A stretch of DNA of 64,000 nucleotides, from contig CM074512.1 in NCBI GenBank assembly GCA_037379345.1, forward strand, positions 32,426,001-32,490,000, written 5' to 3'. The position numbers and the translations under genes were made by a program. Source of the DNA: Perna viridis (Eukaryota). The number at the start of each line of letters is the position of its first letter. The stretch's first letter is position 1. This document shows, in pieces, positions 42,423 to 64,000 of this stretch. Below the pieces are notes generated by a model, which had not been told where the DNA came from, made no database searches, and saw nothing but the letters and a program-made list of their open reading frames with translations.

Positions 42423-45400
42423 CAAAGCAATGAAGAAGAGGATGACAGTTACGTGCCTAGAGGAAGAGGTAAATCAACCAGAGGAGGTAGAGGGTATAGA
42501 GGAAGGGGTGGTTCTGTACGAAATGATGAGAGGTAATTTACACAGAGAACAAAGATTAAGTTGACAGAGTAGGTTTGTAAGAGCGGCTTCTTAAATATAT
42601 TTTGTATACACAGTAATATTATTTAGAAATACTATCTGTCAAAAATTGTTCATGACTGGTTTCTATTCACCATGGTGCCATATTTTAAACGCGAGTTTGC
42701 GTATACTTTTTTTTATCATATTTCAACGTGTTTAAGAGTAATCAAGGGAACCAAGGTTATAGCGGTAATCAAAAGAATGTAATCCAGGGACAAAGACCAG
42801 ACATGGAAAACAGACATACACAACAAAGAACACAAAGTAACTAATATCATACATACAAAGTAACAAAAGTAAATGAGCAACTCGGACTCCACTAAAAACT
42901 GGGAGCATGGACCAGGTGCACCGGTAGGGTAAGCGTCCTCTGCTTTTCTAGAAACACCCGCCGAGTTGCTCATAAAAAGTCAAGTCCGGGGTAGACAAAC
43001 GAGGAAAGGTAAACTATGACCCGTTGAATAAATCAGTTTTCATGGTGCTGATGGATGCATCATAACGGTCCACGAGTTTCGATATGTCTTTTTTAGCACT
43101 TTAAAGGAAAATCATGATAATCATTATGCCTCTTCTTATTTTAGGACTAAACATTGGAGAAAGGTCTTTGGATTTACGAGGTTGACTGAGTACCAAAATG
43201 GGGAAGCAAGCGACTTAGTGCTGAAGTTTGTAAGCGAACAACAACTATTGAAGGAAGTACTTCAATGTGACGACCACAGTGATGAAATGGTAGAGCTTTT
43301 ATTGAAATGCTTATCAAAAGCCTGTTGTTATAGTATCTTAAAACAGCATGTGCAACAAATTCTTATTATACTCCAAGCCTCAACATTTTTTAAAATGACT
43401 ATACTACAATTAATTCTAAAAATTACAAAGCTGCCAGTTTCTGAATTAGACAAATATGAAGCATCATTAATCAGCATAATAAATTTAATCAAAGAAATGA
43501 AATCAAAAATGCCGAATACTATGTTTGAAGTTATTGGTATAACAACAGTTCTGGAAAAAGTTGTGTCTCGTGTATCAGCATGCAGCACTTTACAATCCGC
43601 GGAGATTGTTGCGGCTTTTAAACGTTTGGAACTATCGAACGAAGAAGAAATGCAAGAAATGTCATATGAAAAAGATCATTCCCATAAGCGTACATTTAGA
43701 CCTGATGAGGAGGATCAAGAACCACCAGAAAATTTCCATGAGATTCCAGTGTTCCCAGAGGAGCATGATATTTTGGTTAATATGAACCCTTTCCTCCGTA
43801 TGAACAAACGTTGTGGAGGTTACCAGGACCTTAATCATTACTTAGATGTACAGTTTCGACTGCTACGGGAGGATTTCATAGGCCCACTTAGAGATGGAAT
43901 TCAACAGTACATTGCGTTGTTAAAAGGAACAAACAATGGCGATAAAAAAAGTAAAATGCCAAAAGACATACGAGTATACACGGATGTCCAAGTCATAAGT
44001 TCGGTCTGCAATAGCAGTGGCTTGTGTCGCAGAATTTCTTTTTCTTGCCCAGGATTCAAGCGCATTCATTGGGAATCTAGCAAAAGATTGCTTTTTGGAT
44101 CACTTGTCTGTCTATCTAATGACGATTTTGACACATTATATTTCGCAACTGTCGGGAACAGGGACTTTAAAAATTTGCGAAAGGGTTTAGTAGACATAAA
44201 ATTCGAAGATGACTCAAATACGATGGCGTGTCTTCCAGAAAATGCTATTTTCAAAATGGCGGAGTCTAGTGCATTCTTTGAGGCATATCGTCACGTTTTG
44301 TCTGGTTTGAAGACATTGCTGAATGGAGATCTTCCTTTCGAAAAATATATAGTACACTCTAAAGCCAACGTGGATGAACCGGCTTACATACGTCGAAATC
44401 CGCATGCTATGTTTGATCTCAGACCTTTAGTTGATGATGACGTTGTATTAGTAGAGAAGACAAAAGAAAACATAAGATCACGTTGGAATGGATATAACTT
44501 CTCACCAGAATCAGCTCAAGCGCGAAATGTTCCTGTTATGAATTATGACCAGTGGCCTTCCGCAGATGCACTTCATCTGAACGAATCTCAGTATAGTGCT
44601 GTCCAAATGGCACTCTCTAAAGAGTTTGCAATTATACAAGGCCCCCCAGGAACGGGTAAGACATACATTGGTAAGAAGATAGTCAAGGCGCTCTTACACA
44701 ACAAGGATATTTGGTCTCCTAATGTAGATGAAAATAAACTCCTTCTTGTTGTTTGCTACACCAATCATGCCCTTGATCAGTTCTTAGAAGGAATTGATGA
44801 GTTCTACAAAGGAGGTATACTGAGACTAGGAAGTCGAAGTTCAAGTGACGTGATGAAAAGGCATAACATCAATACAAAGAGATTAGAATTGCGCAGGAAC
44901 CGGAGAGCACCAACAGCGCTGCATCGTGAGAGAGTGAAAGCTAGGGTTAAAAGGAATACACTAAAAATACAGATTAATGCAATAGCAGATAAAATAGAAA
45001 AAGCCAAAAGAGATGTACTGCATGAGGATACACTACAACCCTTCATCGGAACGCAACTTAGGTTTCAACTGACACGTGGCTGCAATTTACTTATTAATGA
45101 GATGAAGGCTCATGGAATTTATCCAAGTCGTGGATTTGAAATGTGTGCAATTTTAGAGTGGCTAGGGTATGGAAACTTGACTTGTGGTAAACAAACGCTT
45201 CATTTACCCACGACGAACTATGATCCCGAAGAAGATGATGATGATGATTATAATGATGATGAATACATCGATGCAGAAGATGAAGTAGACCGAGAAATGT
45301 TAAACAGAATTCCAGATATATATGACGAAAGGAACGAAGAAATTGACAAAAATGCAGCAGTTCTCGAAATTTCAAAGTTGTTTGCAGCTTTGGGCTTATC

Positions 45401-48400
45401 AAATGACAGGGTAGCATTAGATGTCTCTAGTATTGGATCAAAACGTTCATACACCTCTGGTGAATGGCAAATGGATGCAAAACAAAGAAAAAGGTTGAAA
45501 AAAACAATACGTTACGAACTAGCGTCTTCTGATAGAATGTCAATGCGAGATGTGTACAGAATTCAGAACATTTGGACATTAAAACAGAAAGATAGATGGC
45601 GACTTTACAGATTTTGGATTTTTCTTTACTGTCAGACGCTCCAAGAACAGATTCGCGACGCAGAAAAGGTATTTCAAGATGCATGTGACTTAGTAAACGA
45701 AATTCAATTACATGAAGACAAAGAAATCATGAAACGTTCAACTGTCATTGGAATGACCACAACTTGTGCGGCACGGTACCAGTCAGTTTTAAAAGAGATA
45801 GGACCTAAAATAGTCATTGTCGAAGAGGCTGCTGAAGTTTTAGAGGCACACGTTTTAACTACACTTAGTAAATATTGTGAGCATCTGATATTGATCGGTG
45901 ACCATCAACAGCTGAAACCAAGTCCAACGGTGTACAAGCTAGCTAAGAACTACAACCTTGACTTGTCACTCTTTGAAAGATTAATTAACAACAAGATGGA
46001 CTTCCGTTGCTTAGCTTTGCAACATAGAATGAGACCAGAGATTTCAACAATCATGAAAATTATCTACCCAAAGCTACAAGACCATAATTCTGTAAAGAAG
46101 TACCCGTCTATAAAGGGTGTTTCTACCAATGTGTTTTTAATAGACCACAGTGAACAGGAAACTTCAGATGAAGACATCGTCAGCCATTCGAATACTCACG
46201 AGGCGGAGTTTATTGTAGCTTTATGTAAATATCTATTACTCCAAGGATACAAATGCCACCAGATCACTGTTTTAACACTGTACTCGGCTCAGTTGCGCGA
46301 ATTAAAAAACCGCATGCCAAAAAAATATTTTGACGGGTTACGGCTCACAGTTGTTGACAATTATCAGGGCGAGGAAAATGACATAGTCTTACTCTCATTA
46401 GTAAGAAGTAATACAAACAGAATTTCTGGTTTTGTCAGCATTGAGAATCGTATATGTGTTGCGTTTTCTAGAGCAAAATTGGGACTATTTATTATCGGAA
46501 ATTTCCGCATGTTAGAAAGAGCGAAAGACAGAAAAAGTGATTTATGGAAAAAAATTGTGTCTTTAGCAGAGGACAAAAATATGATCGGTCCAAATCTCTT
46601 ACTTAAATGTCAAAACCACCCAATGGACGAGGGAATTGGTGCGAGTTCTGCAGCGGACTTTCGAAAAGCGCCAGAAGGAGGATGTATGAAACCTTGCGAG
46701 GCCCTGTTGAATTGTGGCCATGCCTGTACTAAAGCTTGCCATGTATATGACAAAAACATAAGGAATATACATGTATGAAACCCTGCGAAAGGCAGGTTTG
46801 TGGAATTAAAGGCCATAAATGCACTCGCACTTGTGGAAAGAAATGTGAACAATGTATGATTAAAATTCCAAAAGTTATTCCGGGCTGTTATCATGAACAG
46901 GATGTACCATGTTCCCAGGATCCATCGACATGGAAATGCATGGCTCAATGTAGACGTATACTGTCATGTGGTCATCCTTGTCAGAGCAAGTGTAGTGAAC
47001 CACACACAATACAGTGCCAGTTTGATGTCAAGAAAACTGCCCCGTGTGGTCATTTCATTAAAGTTAGATGTTTTGAAACCTTTACAGCAATATGCTCTAA
47101 ATCTTGTGATGCATTTTTAGATTGTGGACATCCCTGCACTGGAACATGTGGTGAGTGTTTCAGTGGTAAACTGCACAGACCGTGTAGACAAAAATGCAAA
47201 AGAACGCTTGTTTGTGAGCACGAATGTTCAGACAACTGTTCAAACTGCCCTCCCTGTTCAAGAATTTGCCAAAATAGATGTATTCACAGCGTCTGTCAAA
47301 AATACTGTGGAGAAATATGCATCTTATGCATTGAACAATGTGAATGGCGCTGTAAGCACTTTGTCTGTAATAAGCTTTGCTATGAACCTTGTGAACGACC
47401 TCGTTGTAATAATCCCTGCCTGAAACAGCTTCCATGTGGGCACGACTGCATTGGTTTATGCGGGGAAATGTGTCCTCGCGTCTGCCGTGTCTGCGACAAG
47501 GAAAAGGTTAAAGAGATACTTTTCGGAACAGAAGATGATGATGATGCCCGATTTGTCCAATTGGAAGACTGTAAACATTTCTTTGAAGTTGGTGGACTAG
47601 ATCAATGGATGGATCAACCAGTTGAAAGTGATGAAAGAAAAGTTTCAATCAAGCTTAAAGAATGTCCGCTCTGTAAAACTCCAATCAGAAGAAACTTAAG
47701 GTATGGCAATATGATAAAGAGTACTTTGAGAGATATTGAGAAGGTAAAAAAACAAATCCAAGGCGGTAGGCAAAATATAACTGCAATACGGCTTTCGATC
47801 GAGAGAGATATCCAGAGATTTGGAACAGAAGATCAGAAGGCAATTTCTGAAATATATTCAAGAAAGAGACAGAATGGTTTGTCTTCAGTCCAATCCTATG
47901 AAACAGTGAAGAATCAGTTACTGTTTCTGCAGAAGCTACAAGATCTCAAAAGACAACTAAAACACAGACATTTAGAAATTACGCCATGCAGAATGTTTCA
48001 AATGACTAACCAGGCAGTTTCAAATCTAAGGTACTTCATCGTCCAGGAACGGAACTATTTCACCGACCAGGAAATAGCCGATATTATGGAAGAAATCGAT
48101 AGGTTGACATTTCTGTTGCAGTATTGTGAGCTGGAAAAGTATATAGAACGTACGACGTTTAAGTTTGTCAAACACAAAGCTGCAACATATGATATGACAA
48201 AGGATTGGCTAACTAAGGACAGACGACTTTCAGAAACAGAAAAGACATGTATTAAACAATTTCTAAAAAGTATGAAACATTTGATAAAAAAAGATGGATT
48301 AGGAATAACAGACAAAGAAAGGGAAGAGATTGTTCGTGCCATGGAGCTGTCAAAAGAACATTGGTTCAAATGCCCCAGTGGTGAGTTGTATTAGGATTAA

Positions 48401-56949: not shown

Positions 56950-57302
56950 TGTCCCTCATCCTTGAACGGTTCAAATTTTAAACCCCAATATCAATCCTAG
57001 TAGGACCTTATTAGTATGAAATATTGTGGAATAATATCATAGACACTCACATACCTTTAATGGAGTAAAGTTATAGTTCTTTTTTTTTTAACTTGTTTTG
57101 TGAATTTTTGGCCCCTAATTCTTAAAAGATTGGGGCAATAACCCTTAAATCAATATAAACATCCATTTAATTGTTTGCAACATCGTGATAAAATCTTATA
57201 AAATTCAACCAACTAATAGTCAAGTTACCGTCAAGACGACGACGACACGGACGACGACAGACTTATACCATTATACGACCATTAATTATTTACGGTCGTA
57301 CA
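56950..57302 (+). mobile_element. HINE/MITE-like element end within the presumed 3' UTR of copy 4
   Basis: (GAC)n tract 57235-57258 followed by hairpin TACGACC..GGTCGTA (57274-57300). Left boundary uncertain. Confidence 0.4.
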
Positions 57303-57374
57303 GAAATATTATCGTTCATATTGGTATCAGCAAAAATAACAGCAAATTCAAAGTATAAATGATTGTAAGCATGA

Positions 57375-60300
57375 CTAAAATCTTATTTGAAAAGGGTCAT
57401 AATTTCCCATATTTGCTAGTTCGGACCATGCTGGGTGAGAAGCACCATCCATTTCTGGAGCAAAACGATTATCGTCTCTGAGTCTGTGCCCAGACCCGCC
57501 AATTGTAGATCCACATTCAGGACATCTGCTCTCAACAGTCGCACCTCCACAATCTGCTATCGCATAAATATGTCCTGAAAATGGTAGCAAACAATCGCTA
57601 TCAAATCTGGATGAAATGTTCAAGGATTGACTATATTTGCAAACGGATTTAAAAATGTTTGAAAATTTCTACGTATACGTTTCTAGTCACATGTCATCAA
57701 TTTCATTCCATTTTAATATTTTTTTAGTTAAAAGCCAAAAATTTACCAACTAAATGTCTTTTCTTCTCATATTACGAGTATTGATTCCCACTAAAATAAT
57801 GAAAAATAGTATTGGGTCGTAGGTAATTATAACTCATTATTCTGCATTCACATAAACGAATCAAGTGAGTTTTTTTTCGTACAACACATAACCCGTTTCC
57901 GGTCTAAGCATTTAAACTGACAGCAGCAGTGCGTATTTATATCTGAAATGGGAGACAATGATATCAACTGCAGTTTTGGGCAGTACAACTGCTTAATCCC
58001 TACTTCAATATAAAGATGCATCTCGTATTTAAAGACACTTTCGAAATTTTATGCAGAACATGGCTGGTAATAGTTCCGCTCAATTAAAAAAAATCTAGAT
58101 TAAAGCCTAAACTGTGAAGCGTCATAGCCATGCAACAACAAAAAAGCTATATATTCGCACAAAAATAATGTACCTTATCGGATCATTTCATTGGCAGCAG
58201 TATTTCCCAATTGTAAATGGCCCATTCCCCCGATACGAGATTTACATTCAGGACAAATTCCGTGTTGATTAGCCTGGCCACAATTACCAATGGCATATAT
58301 GTGGCCTAAAAAAACAAATAGTTTTCCGTTTTCTTTCTTTTAACAAATACACTGATCAATAAACATCCAAGATATATTTAATTTGTTTTCAGTTAAAACT
58401 AGAACACTGTTTTTAAAATTTACCTTGATTTAGTCTAATCAGTAGGGATATTGCATAATACTTGGTAATATGTGTACTTAATTTACCAACAAAACCTTTT
58501 TTTTTTGCAATTCATACACGCATAACACGAACACTTTAGTACAGAATGAAACCACAATGGGTATTAAAGTTCTGTCAAATTCCGTAAACACTTAAATTCA
58601 TTACATTTTCTTTTGGCAGGAATTTTGGCAACATGTTTCGACAACTTATATATTCCAACCAAGAAATTCTATCATATCGGGCCAACTTTTGACAAATTAT
58701 CTAAATGTTGGAACATGTCGTTGAAAAAAACAACCGAAACATCGTAATTTAATAAGAAATTAACGAAAGTTGCATAGAAACAATACTTTGAGAATCCATT
58801 TTGCCAAATGAATGTTGCCACAGCTCGTAAGCCCTGTATGTCCGGATTTAGTCATCTTTTTAACACCAAAATATACGTCTTTTAGTAAGCTAAGGTAGTA
58901 CTAAACGGATAAGTCAATTCTGAAAATTTGGTCCCATTTTGTTGAAATAAAGCTTTTTAGAGGCAGTCCGCACAGAAATTTAAAGTGTTTTGTCATGAAA
59001 CAGTACATATTTTTCTAATCCATGGTGTGTGCATGTTCAAGTAATTTATAAGTAATTTAATTATTATTGTTATAAAAGCCAACAGCCATGGTAACATACT
59101 GAAAAAAATACACATATTACTGTGTTTTAGTACAAATCAGGGGTGCCTTTCCAAAACTAAACAGCCAAATATTATGTTTATAAAACATCAGGAACTTTAT
59201 AGACACTAGCACAGAGTGAAAGCATACATTGAGGAGGTGGAAAAAGGGTAAAAATAGTAATACCCTTTTCGATTCATGAACTCAGAGTTTTAATTCCAAA
59301 AGTTCATGCGCGATAAGATAATTTGAAAATCAGCCAGCTGATGCTGAGGAGAGAACCTAAAAGAGCAGAAGACTGAAACGTTCCGGCTACCATTCTTCAT
59401 TTAAACTACACCTGTTTACCATTACACATATTGCTTCGGTCTATGTATAAATGCTACATTTACATAAAAACTACATTTAAACAATATATCCACCAAATTT
59501 CAACTTGTACAATTTTGAGTTTTACAAAATTTGACCGGGTCAACTTGCTGTGCGAACAGTGTGTCTAAATGTAACTGTATAGTGCACCCTAAAACTAACA
59601 ATAAATAACATGACCAGAAACTAGTTTTAACGAATATAACGGATCGTTTATGCTCTTTAACATACAAAGAATATTCAATATGGATAGCTATACCCTCTTA
59701 AACTGTGACCTTTCATGCTTGAGCTCGTGTACTTACAAAACAAAGGGGAATATACTTGTGCTACAATTGGTTTTAAGATTTCAATGTCATTTGTACATGC
59801 TTAATAGTATCATTGGTTTAAGTTTACGCCCCGTTTTTTTTTTTTTTTTGAGATTTTGACTTATTTGAACCTTCAACTACTGACGCTCCGGTATTTTTTG
59901 CCGATATTCCGCAACTCAAATGGGGGCAGTATCATAAGAATATCAGATTTTTTTTTCATAGAAATTAGTGTTATGATAGCATGAGAGAACTTAATAGTGA
60001 CTTACCTTGAGGACATTTAAACCAATGACCTTGCCCAAGTCCTATTGCTGACACTATGGCTTTTCTCTCTTTGTCTGTGATTCCTAACCCAGACAAAGGT
60101 AAAACTTCCTTTAGCTTTTCAAATGTCATGTTCACAAACCCATTTCTTTCCATCTTGTACGGACCTTTGGTAAGATATTGTTCGACTGTCATGAAATCGA
60201 GGCCCAAGTCTCTTGGTAAAGTTGTGTCTAAGGTTCGTTTTCTCTCTTTGAATTTCAGGAATTTTCGTAGTTTTTGCAGACGTTCCAACTCAACGTTTAT

Positions 60301-63300
60301 GTCATTTATCTCCTGAGTAGTGAAGTATCGCCTTATCTGAAGGGTAAAAGAAAGACAGTCGTCTAGACTCCCAAGTGCTTTGTTGTACATATCCATGTAA
60401 GAAGCCGATGCTTTATCTTTCTCGAAATCTCGTTTTAGATCTTCGACTTGCCTTACAATGATAATTTGATTCTGAATTGCCGAAAGGGTATTCTCATCAT
60501 AAGGTCCTTTGGTCAGACAATCATAGAATTCTTTTATTTTCCTAGCATATTTTACATGCAAGTGTGGCATTTCTCTTGAAATTGATCTTTCCAGGTCCCT
60601 TTTTATAGGGTCATTTCCGAGCATGCGTTTTTTAACAGCTTCTATGTCTTGTAAAGCCCGTTTAATCATGTTTCCATAACGCAGATTACGTCGAATCGCA
60701 GTTTTACACCGTGGGCATTCTTTCAGTTTTACAGCCGTATCACTACCTTCATTTGTAACATTGTCCATCCAATGATCGAGATCTGAGTATTCGAAAACAT
60801 GACCACAATCTTCGAGCTGAACATATCTTGCTTTGTCTTCATCTTCACTACCTAGAAAGACTTCTGTTACGATATCATTGTGGCATACTTTGCAAAGGGT
60901 CGGACAAGGTTCCCCACAAAGACCAATACATTGGTGACCACACTGAAGCGTCTTCCTGCAGGGTTTGTTGCATCGAGGTCTCTCACAAGGTTCGCTGCAT
61001 ATTTTCTCACATCTGTGATGCCGACATTGCCACTCGCATAACTCTGCACAAGGTACGCATAAGTCGCCACATTTCTTTCCACAGAAGCTGTGTTTACAAC
61101 GGTTTTCGCATTTACGCGTACATGGTGGGCAATTTGAGCAACGATCTCCACATGGATGTTCACACACTAACGGTCGCTTGCATAATTGAGTGCATGGCTT
61201 GTGAAGCCTTTTCTGGAAACAATCGCCACACGTTCCTCCGCAGACATCTCCACATTCCAGCACCACATTGCATTTAACTGTGCACCTTGTTGAAATTTTC
61301 TCATAACAATTAATGTTAGCAGTATGTCCACAATCCCAAGTCATTTGAATTTTAACAGTGCAAGACTCCGTATGTCCTTCTCCGCACAAATTTTTGCAAG
61401 GGTGACCACAAGGTAAACGTTCTGGGCATTTTGATGTACATCTCCAGTGAGTGGGATCAACATAGCATGGCACATATTGCTTATGTCCACATTGTGGTAA
61501 AAACTTTTCCACCATTTCATGACATTTTCCACATTCTTGATTACACCTTCTTTTACATCTGTGTTCCTTTTGACAAATAGTTTTTGTACATGGCTTATTG
61601 CATTCGTACTCTTCGTGGTCTCGATCGTAGGTATGACAAGCTCTGGCACAGGTATGGCCACATGGTAAACGGAATTCACAAGCTTTCATGCAGCCACCTT
61701 CTGGAGCTTTCTTAAAGTCTGAAGGTTCTGCGGCCATAATCATATCGTCTTTCGGATGATTTTGGCAGTAGAGCGGTAGCGCTTCGCCTAGAAACTGTTG
61801 ACGCCTTGCATGGTCGGCAATACCACACCACAATTTGCTTTTATCAGACAATAGGGAGAAGTTTCCGATGACAAAAAGACCCATTTTAGCTCGTGACAAT
61901 GCAACGCAGACTCTGTTATCAATGCTTAAAAATCCAATTTTTCCGTCATCGTTGCTACGCACCAGTGACAATATAATGATATCGTTTTCTTCACCTTGAA
62001 AGTTGTCAACAACAGTCACTCGAACGCCCTCGAAAAAAGTTTTGGGCATTTTTCGTCTAAGTGCAAACAGCTGTCCTGAGTACAAAGTGAGTACTGTAAT
62101 TCTTTCTCGGTCGTATCCTTGCAATATTAGGTATCTACACAGGCCAACGACGTACTCTGCTTCATGTTCATTTGAGTGACTTTTTAAGTCCTCATCATCA
62201 GATTCGAGATTTTTATGATCAATAAAAAACACATTATTGGCAACACCTTTGACATTTTCATAGTGTTTGACAACATCATCATCTCTTAGTTCGGGATATA
62301 TTCGCCTCATCATTCTTGATATATCAGGTCTCATTCTGTGCTGAAACTGCAGACAATCGTATTCAAGCTTGTTGCATATCATTCTCTCAAAAAGAGATAA
62401 TTCCAAATTAAACTTTGTGGCTAGCTTGTATACCGTGGGATTCGGTTTTAATTGTTGGTGATCCCCTATCAAAATAAGATGCTCGCATCGCCTGCTTAGT
62501 GTAGTAACGATGTGAGCTTCCAAAACCTCTGCCGCTTCTTCGACAACAATGATGCGGGGTCCAATTTCTTGGAGAACTGACTGGTATCTTGCGGCACATG
62601 TCGTTGTCAAACCAATTACAGTCGAATGACGCATAATTTCTCGGTCTTCTTGCATCAAAACCTCATTGTATTGTCTACACGCAACTTCAAATTGGTCTTC
62701 TTTCCCACGTATCTTATCCTGAAGATTTTCGCAATATGCGTTTACCCAGTAACGATACAAACGCCACTTGTTCTTTTGTGACAATGTCCACATATCAAAG
62801 TTTCTAGAAACTTCTGGTCCCGTCATTCGGTCATGAGACAAAAGCTCCCTCCTTATTGTTTTCTTCATTCTTTTCTTTTGATCTTTAGTCATTTGCCACT
62901 GGCCCGCAGTGGTCGGTTTCTTGTCCTCTGCATCTAAGTTTGATACATCAAGGGCGACTAAAAGCCGTTGGGCGCCTAAATCGACCTGTTGTAACTGCTC
63001 TTGAAGGTCAGCTACGAGTGGGTCATCATCTTCCTCTATATCCAGGTCTTCAATGTCCAACTGTCTCATATTCATTTCTGCATCGAGTTCGTCTATCACA
63101 TTAATGAACTCGTCCATCAGTTCATCTTGTTCCTCTTCATTGTTGTTACCTTGGTTTTGTACGTTGTCGTGTCGAGCATTTACATTCTCCTGGTTTTCGT
63201 TTTGACCGACTGGTTCATCTTGCTCACCAACAAGCAGCATCTCACCATATCCAAGCCATTCCAATAGCGCCGAATGATGTTTCTTCTTATTCCACTCAAA

Positions 63301-64000
63301 TCCATAATTCATCATTTCTCTAACTCGGTATTCAAAACCAGATATCAATCGTGAGTAAAATTTTCCCATAACTACTTCTAAGCTGTCTTCGTGCAGAATT
63401 TCTCGTTTTGCCATTTCAATTCGTCCAGATATTTTGTTAATCTCATCTTGAAATGCTTTCATTTCATGTTTTGTGCGCATTCGTGCAAGATGTACTTCTC
63501 GTGGAACCTCCCGTCTCCTCCTCATTGCCATTCTCATGTTATTGATGTTTAATTGCTTCATTACCTCACTCGAGGAACGACTTCCCAACCGAAGTATGTC
63601 TCCTTTGAAAAATCTTAAAATTCCTTCTAGAAATTGATCAAGTGCGTGATTTGTATAGCAGACGACAAGTAAAGGTCGGTTGTCTTCAGCACCGAGGGCT
63701 GGGTCAGTATTCCACAAAGATCTATTATGGAGAAGTGCCTTAACGACCTTCAAACCAATGTACGTTTTTCCAGTCCCAGGTGGGCCTTGTATGATAGCAA
63801 ACTCCCTGGAAAGAGCGTTCTGAACAGCTCTATATTGCGACATATCTAAATGAAAAAGATCGGCTACTGGCCAGGTCTTTAAGTCGTCGACTTTAACTCG
63901 TCGAGCCCCAATTGACTTCGGGCTAAAGTTGTACGTCGTATCTCTTGCATCTTCTTCTCGGTTTCCAGGTATATTTTTGCGTCCTCGTAAGATTATCTCC
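57375..64000 (-). CDS. ZNFX1: ZNFX1-like copy 4, 5'-partial; join(>64000-60006, 57574-57375)
   Basis: Frame is open from the window edge (EIILRGRK..LFHLDMSQY) through the 1290-aa ORF. Donor CAA G|gtaagt at 60006/60005; acceptor tttcag|GA CAT at 57574 gives GHIYAIADCGGATVESRCPECGSTIGGSGH..PFQIRF*. Confidence 0.93.
58175..58305 (-). CDS. ZNFX1: Alternative RZ-finger exon of copy 4
   Basis: tatttgtttttttag|GC CAC ATA TAT GCC..CGA TAA. In phase with the 60006 donor it gives GHIYAIGNCGQANQHGICPECKSRIGGMGHLQLGNTAANEMIR*, with all RZ Cys/His retained and no lesions. Confidence 0.85.

Follow-up and report, generated by a model that had tools for sequence, protein, structure and literature searches.

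The stretch of DNA analysed here (the window) covers 64,000 nucleotides (nt) of the Perna viridis genome (assembly GCA_037379345.1, contig CM074512.1, positions 32,426,001 to 32,490,000 of the forward strand); its list of open reading frames (ORFs) and inspection of the sequence reveal three ZNFX1-like genes in this 64-kb window, designated copies A, B and C. The subject of this analysis is copy C (gene C), which lies on the minus strand and carries two exons, one proximal and one distal, each encoding a version of the second half of its C-terminal RZ finger (Table 1). The large constant exon of gene C encodes the helicase, the NFX1-type zinc fingers, a helical bundle and the start of the RZ finger including the first zinc-ligand Cys, and it ends in ...GHWFKCPQ plus the G of a split Gly codon (TGT CCT CAA G|GTAAGT, phase 1); its 5' end is the limit of the open frame and not a mapped exon border, and the gene runs past the window edge. 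The proximal exon (ag|GC CAC ... CGA TAA G|GTAC) adds 42 residues to the split Gly, (G)HIYAIGNCGQANQHGICPECKSRIGGMGHLQLGNTAANEMIR, and then a stop, and the distal exon (ag|GA CAT ... TTT TAG) supplies 65 residues with the tail ...EMDGASHPAWSELANMGNYDPFQIRF and its TAG at 57377-57375.

A preliminary description of this DNA held that both exons keep the RZ spacing H-x6-C-x8-CxxC-x8-H. Our alignment bears this out. The scores against the Pfam profile PF20173 (ZnF_RZ; the window exons were searched singly) are 47.5 bits for the proximal and 57.3 bits for the distal exon with a cut-off of 27. Both exons match the profile from position 18, positions 1-17 falling in the constant exon. The DNA pattern of the CPEC knuckle occurs four times in the window, once in A, once in B and twice in C, against 0.02 occurrences expected. 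The zinc ligands Cys, His, Cys and Cys are provided by WFKC of the constant exon and by H1, C17 and C20 of either alternative exon, with the human spacing kept, and the Cys/His dyad positions are C8 and H29 in each of the two window exons, as they also are in the orthologues from Mytilus. Two further features pointed out earlier are likewise found: the proximal exon is without the DGA.H.AWS..NYDPF tail, which is present in the other three RZ exons of the window according to the alignment of all four, and it is missing from the ORF list because it has no early start codon. The ZNFX1 architecture, in which an SF1 helicase is combined with a stalk of NFX1-type zinc fingers and a C-terminal RZ finger, is evident from the AAA_11 and AAA_12 domains on the window exon and from the closest homologues, which carry PF25396 (ZNFX1), helicase domains and PF20173.

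Splicing was followed in RNA run X21, a stranded run of one sample from the same organism, about one fifth of which was mapped to positions 57000-60300; its exonic reads all indicate a minus-strand transcript. The phase-1 donor at 60006 (WFKCPQG|) had been described as joining either exon, and both junctions are present: the skipping junction 60006>57574 is covered by 6 reads with 5 start positions, the inclusion junction 60006>58305 by 1 read, and contigs from other studies contain the former (X23) and the latter (X24, 52 nt, depth 14.5). Another 4 reads with 2 start positions join 58174 to 57574, connecting the proximal to the distal exon. Read depth is 18-20 over the constant exon, 10-17 over the distal exon and the 3' untranslated region (UTR), with about 13 over the distal exon itself, about 3 over the proximal exon and 0-2 over most of the intron; inclusion amounts to about 30% by junctions, calculated as 2.5/(2.5+6), and to about 20% by depth, both from small counts in one sample. 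The G|GT right after the TAA is thus a working donor, and the proximal exon is therefore a 132-nt cassette and not a free-standing terminal exon. Of the earlier proposal that gene C has two alternative terminal exons, the use of both exons stands, but they are not parallel, as the proximal one is spliced onward. Nor do they form a mutually exclusive pair: the exons are homologous and of the same phase, but the reads, and also the mRNA contig L018 of another mytilid (see below), join them. The exclusivity of the two exons acts at the level of translation, through the stop codon.

Table 1. Coordinates of the ZNFX1-like genes and of the gene C features in the window
Feature	Position	Strand	Evidence
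Gene C, large constant exon	60006..63843	minus	ORF list; Pfam AAA_11/AAA_12; RNA depth 18-20
Gene C, GT of consensus donor (CAAG|GTAAGT), common to both splice forms	60004..60005	minus	Sequence, RNA reads
Gene C, proximal RZ half-finger cassette exon, 132 nt	58174..58305	minus	PF20173 47.5 bits; RNA junctions; orthologues in Mytilus and third mytilid
Gene C, TAA stop of short isoform, 1 nt upstream of cassette 3' end	58175..58177	minus	Sequence; same TAA-G|GTA in three Mytilus genomes
Gene C, GT of weak cassette donor (TAAG|GTACAT)	58172..58173	minus	4 RNA reads, 2 start positions, 58174 to 57574
Gene C, distal RZ half-finger exon, coding part	57375..57574	minus	PF20173 57.3 bits; junction 60006>57574
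Gene C, 3'UTR of both forms, extends below 57000	57000..57374	minus	RNA depth 10-17
Polymorphism G>A (plus strand), cassette codon 23 CGT->TGT (Arg->Cys)	58237	minus	3/4 RNA reads
High-copy repeat in intron between constant exon and cassette	58900..59600	.	DNA run X15, word depth 1e4-1e5 vs ~105 in flanks
Copy C (gene C), large open frame	63843-59971	minus	ORF list
Copy A	Large ORF 26535-31814; RZ exon from 32148	plus	ORF list
Copy B	43182-48394; RZ exon from 50003	plus	ORF list

Other RNA observations concern the intron between the constant exon and the cassette. Intron-retaining transcripts exist: the 1798-residue protein P0001, which is 100% identical over the 380-residue C-terminal query, reads from CPQG into the intron (…KSLLSSLMLS stop), the intron part concerned being 59886-60005, and immediately past the donor the RNA depth still amounts to about 10% of that over the exon. 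Judged from its sequence, such a retention product would be without the whole catalytic half of the RZ finger. Over the intronic repeat at 58900-59600, RNA reads of both strands have loose ends running into other sequence. When the final 200 residues encoded by the constant exon were used to search for own-species transcript ORFs with either tail, a single match of unrelated length was obtained.

The catalytic meaning of the two exons can be read from human ZNFX1, in which zinc is bound by C1849, H1853, C1869 and C1872, ubiquitin is accepted by the nucleophile C1860, and H1881 acts as general base (bioRxiv 10.1101/2025.10.14.682297). C1860 is labelled by E2-ubiquitin probes (bioRxiv 10.1101/2025.10.14.682297; 10.1101/2025.09.05.674436), the substitution H1881N abolishes RZ-dependent activity (bioRxiv 10.1101/2025.09.05.674436), and a second, RING-like domain upstream (Miz or Z-RING) binds E2 (bioRxiv 10.1101/2025.10.14.682297; 10.1101/2025.09.05.674436). 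Mapped by spacing, the constant exon contributes the equivalent of C1849, and each alternative exon contributes H1 (H1853), C8 (C1860), C17 and C20 (C1869 and C1872) and H29 (H1881). By homology to the human protein, the swapped exon carries the predicted nucleophile, base and three zinc ligands; given this mapping, splicing would exchange both catalytic residues at once with three of the four zinc ligands, which agrees with the earlier suggestion that a catalytic tip is swapped on a constant helicase body. The two exon classes are distinguished by fixed differences, IGNC (proximal) versus IADC (distal) near the nucleophile and AN[QE]HGI versus AT[VI]ES[RK] in the loop before the knuckle (GQANQHGI and GGATVESR in the window). 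Past the base His, all that the short form retains before its stop is L..[GD]N..A.EM, whereas the distal exon has EMDGA.H.AWS..NYDPF.

Compared with the sequences in the PDB, the short form aligned to the RZ finger of RNF213 (E = 3e-7) with all key residues matched. AlphaFold models of both forms, calculated from natural mRNA contigs of relatives (L018 and L021) with 40-row alignments, agree in their helical bundle, in a helix ahead of the finger and in short strands. The long form has a mean per-residue confidence (pLDDT) of 83, with 75-89 over the finger and over the tail as far as some 23 residues beyond the base His, and part of its tail is accordingly modelled as belonging to the fold. 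The mean pLDDT of the short form is 78; its model, a small finger plus helices, had no match at E <= 0.001 in a Foldseek search of the PDB, a result that says little for a model of this kind.

The closest named relatives of the C-terminal 380 residues of gene C are Mytilus proteins with 71% identity, and a transcript-derived protein reaches 82%. RefSeq holds isoform pairs X1 (1847-1848 residues) and X2 (1822-1825 residues) for M. edulis, M. galloprovincialis and M. californianus, and the cluster that holds the M. edulis orthologue also includes a RefSeq X2 from M. trossulus and a 2018 M. galloprovincialis pair. X1 and X2 differ by 23 residues (as in 1847 against 1824), which is the difference between the two window tails: X1 ends in ...NYDPFQIRF, and X2 has a C-terminus of the proximal type, GH[IV]YAIG[ND]CGGANQHGICP[EV]CKSQIGGMGHLV[AT]GNTTALEMT[NS]. 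At the corresponding loci in the genomes of M. edulis, M. californianus and M. galloprovincialis there is likewise a cassette of 132 nt, which is preceded by a pyrimidine tract and ag (ag|G) and ends with TAA-G|GTA. In a third mytilid (64% identity), the ORF of mRNA contig L018 ends in the proximal type (cassette at L018:5679-5810), with the TAA 8 nt before the junction and the distal exon following out of frame as untranslated sequence, the same layout as that of the window reads. The open frame, the length and the splice sites of the cassette are kept in at least five species of three genera, with the flanking intron unalignable, and all six key RZ positions are kept in five species.

Two versions of the short tail occur in the third mytilid (L018, P0145/P0147), ...ANEHGIC...GGMGHLQ... 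and ...ANEQGIC...GGMGNLQ..., the second without the base His; they could represent alleles, close species or paralogues. In-frame tandems of both exons were also found in the older gene models P0125 of M. coruscus and P0130 of M. edulis (1889-1890 residues; …ALEMTR|HVYCIADCGG…); these were set aside as probable annotation artefacts, because they need a non-GT donor inside the cassette (M. edulis) and no read supports them.

The tree built from the protein bodies shows A, B and C as three paralogues specific to mytilids, with gene C nested among bivalve ZNFX1 proteins. The C clade, comprising the window gene, the species with 82% identity, the third species and Mytilus, has an SH-aLRT support of 100; the cassette must therefore date back at least to the ancestor that the sampled C genes share. 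In contrast to C, copies A and B and the ZNFX1 loci of Pinctada, Ylistrum and Tegillarca have a single RZ exon each, all sharing the phase-1 intron after CPxG; given the single RZ exon in these three genera, the cassette is not a general bivalve feature. A tree of the exon peptides (43 columns) groups the proximal exons in one clade (100/98) on a stem of 0.67 changes per column with short internal branches, a shape that fits early divergence followed by conservation, as far as these peptide sequences tell. The same tree places the proximal clade beside the Tegillarca/Pinctada type and not beside the gene C distal exon (94/94), on few columns and a long branch.

Orthologous cassettes, whose comparison had been proposed as a check, have open frames and a ratio of nonsynonymous to synonymous change (dN/dS) of 0.12-0.37 between genera, with the nonsynonymous proportion (pN) lower than the synonymous one (pS; Fisher p = 5e-6 to 1e-2). 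The distal exon is more constrained (dN/dS 0.04-0.15). When the cassette was aligned with its 200-nt flanks, conservation was confined to the stretch from the ag to the GTA; since the similarity ends at the exon borders, it bears the signature of a coding exon, and no conserved intronic flank that would mark a splicing regulator was seen in these 200 nt beyond the splice sites. Together these codon comparisons indicate that the cassette is under purifying selection.

We consider it very probable that an expressed, conserved, stop-containing cassette swaps the catalytic RZ half-finger of the ZNFX1-like gene C. It is proposed that the cassette, which sits in the last intron, arose long ago as a copy of the terminal coding exon, covering its first two thirds, and has since diverged. 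An ancient phase-1 intron splits the RZ finger just past WFKCPxG, so that each exon supplies the same set of residues. Skipping of the cassette would give the canonical 66-residue C-terminus; use of the acceptor at 58305 would make translation stop at the TAA 1 nt before the cassette donor, with the distal exon becoming 3'UTR. Because of the position of this TAA, the choice of acceptor alone would set which catalytic half-finger the helicase carries. We infer that the short form is translated and folded as an RZ finger, and its changed loop between nucleophile and knuckle, together with the loss of the EMDGA..AWS..NYDPF tail, would alter the activity, specificity or regulation of the RZ arm. 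It is possible, albeit doubtful in our judgement, that regulated inclusion switches the RZ arm between two active sites that differ in their chemistry or in what they modify. Lysines might then be the preferred acceptors of one form and hydroxyl or non-protein substrates those of the other, or the Miz/RING arm might be uncoupled from one of the two forms.

A stop-containing cassette could alternatively be a regulatory "poison" exon that diverts transcripts from the full-length protein, lowering output or causing mRNA decay, with an encoded peptide of no relevance. The in-frame stop, the minor share of the inclusion form and the weak donor fit this idea, and the dS of the cassette (0.4-1.1) is lower than the value for the distal exon (0.9 to saturated), which would follow from constraint on the RNA sequence as such. 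However, the amino acids are conserved, and three genera have kept all zinc and catalytic positions, for which an exon serving only to bring in a stop would have no need. Moreover, a poison exon that triggers decay has its stop at a distance of over about 50 nt from the last junction. Here this distance is 1 nt for the window gene and Mytilus and 8 nt for the third species, and no placement is less suited to set off junction-dependent decay; with the stop 1 nt before the last junction, the mRNA would therefore be spared decay of the vertebrate type. On balance we regard a poison exon as unlikely. Still less likely, and quite improbable to our minds, is that transcripts can end in the proximal exon at a polyadenylation site of its own, which would make it an alternative terminal exon on a par with the distal one. 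RNA depth in X21 does continue past the cassette donor and fades over about 400 nt (3.1, 2.0, 1.1, 0.8, 0), which could reflect transcripts ending in the intron, and such transcripts would encode the same short protein; but splicing from the cassette donor into the distal exon is seen in four reads, the L018 mRNA also runs into the distal exon, neither a canonical AATAAA nor read ends are reported downstream of the cassette, and the conserved G|GTA donor argues that onward splicing is the norm. The RNA tail may represent retained intron or some intronic 3' ends, and the short protein is the same either way. We give almost no credence to a functionless, decaying duplicate exon that the spliceosome picks up occasionally, for although inclusion is low, the tail is shorter than in all other ZNFX1 exons and a non-synonymous polymorphism occurs among few reads, the open frame, identical length and splice sites are kept in at least five species and three genera next to an unalignable intron, the purifying selection is significant and the cassette is present in transcripts of three lineages.

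Several points weigh against the preferred reading, that of a coding cassette which swaps the RZ half-finger. RNA support in the own species is thin, with 5 inclusion reads from one run plus one 52-nt contig, and the short form is known here from RNA and genes alone. In its AlphaFold model the finger reaches a pLDDT of only 57-75, against 75-89 in the long form. M. edulis and M. trossulus have CPVC in place of CPEC, and in the third mytilid two of three cassette transcripts have Asn at the general-base His, with Gln at another His. Since Asn at this position corresponds to the human H1881N, those short forms would lack RZ transthiolation, and by this analogy the short form may in some lineages be an attenuated or regulatory variant, which is equally possible as a second specificity. 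The position rule for junction-dependent mRNA decay is known from vertebrates and may not be the rule of molluscs.

Among known systems, the human ZNFX1 RZ finger has the same motif, spacing, extreme C-terminal position and modelled upstream helix and helical bundle as the mussel protein; it differs in having the conserved tail past the base His that is absent from the short mussel form. RNF213 resembles the mussel fingers in its PF20173 membership, its Cys/His dyad and the alignment to the short form described above; unlike them, its finger lies inside the protein, ahead of an E2-binding domain at the C-terminus, and it has no helicase body. The nearest counterparts are the Mytilus RefSeq isoforms themselves (for M. 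edulis XP_071160029.1 and XP_071160030.1), products of the orthologous gene with the same tail types and the same 132-nt cassette, which differ from the case described here in coming from automatic annotation and from a genus other than that of the window species (71% over the C-terminal 380 residues). A literature search on RZ fingers, ZNFX1, bivalves and splicing found no paper describing alternative RZ exons in human or any other ZNFX1. The claim that the arrangement had not been described therefore holds for the literature covered by that search but not for the databases, as RefSeq already has both isoforms for Mytilus in the form of automatic models that make no remark on the RZ finger. 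The oyster alternative oxidase (PMC5589949), an example of alternatively spliced tandem exon duplicates, is also a case in which a duplicated bivalve exon gives two variants of one functional segment; there is a difference in that the mussel exons can share one mRNA and owe their exclusivity to the stop codon and not to mutually exclusive splicing.

RZ fingers are newly recognised catalytic modules by which RNF213 and ZNFX1 can ubiquitylate unusual substrates, and the determinants of their specificity are still being sought (bioRxiv 10.1101/2025.10.14.682297). Two versions of the catalytic half-finger kept on one helicase body across mussel genera provide a natural pair of variants for biochemistry, and they suggest that invertebrate antiviral sensing can be diversified by splicing as well as by gene duplication. 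Should regulated inclusion prove to switch between two active sites of differing chemistry or targets, it would be a natural, evolution-tested case of a transthiolating E3 that swaps its active site. Mussel haemocytes raise their levels of ZNFX1-like transcripts, among others, when challenged, and an isoform-aware re-analysis of existing challenge data could therefore show whether the switch is regulated.

Elsewhere in the same genome, the C6 contig contains tandem RZ half-finger exons on the plus strand (L011:1354-1451 and L011:1504-1601, approximately G000:C6:31754903-31755000 and 31755053-31755150). These exons are 98 nt each, not a multiple of three, have the form ag|TGTGG...GG|gta and lie 52 nt apart; the general-base position is Tyr in the first (…IGGEGYNL…) and His in the second (…IGGQGHVL…). 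From its sequence, the pair looks like classic mutually exclusive exons in another RZ gene and hints that RZ exon swapping may be a recurrent strategy. Within the window, the coding region of copy B consists of two ORFs, 43182-46778 and 46775-48394, which overlap by 4 nt in different frames; this split could be due to a frameshift, a tiny intron or an assembly error, and both ORF parts align well to ZNFX1 in the protein-body tree.

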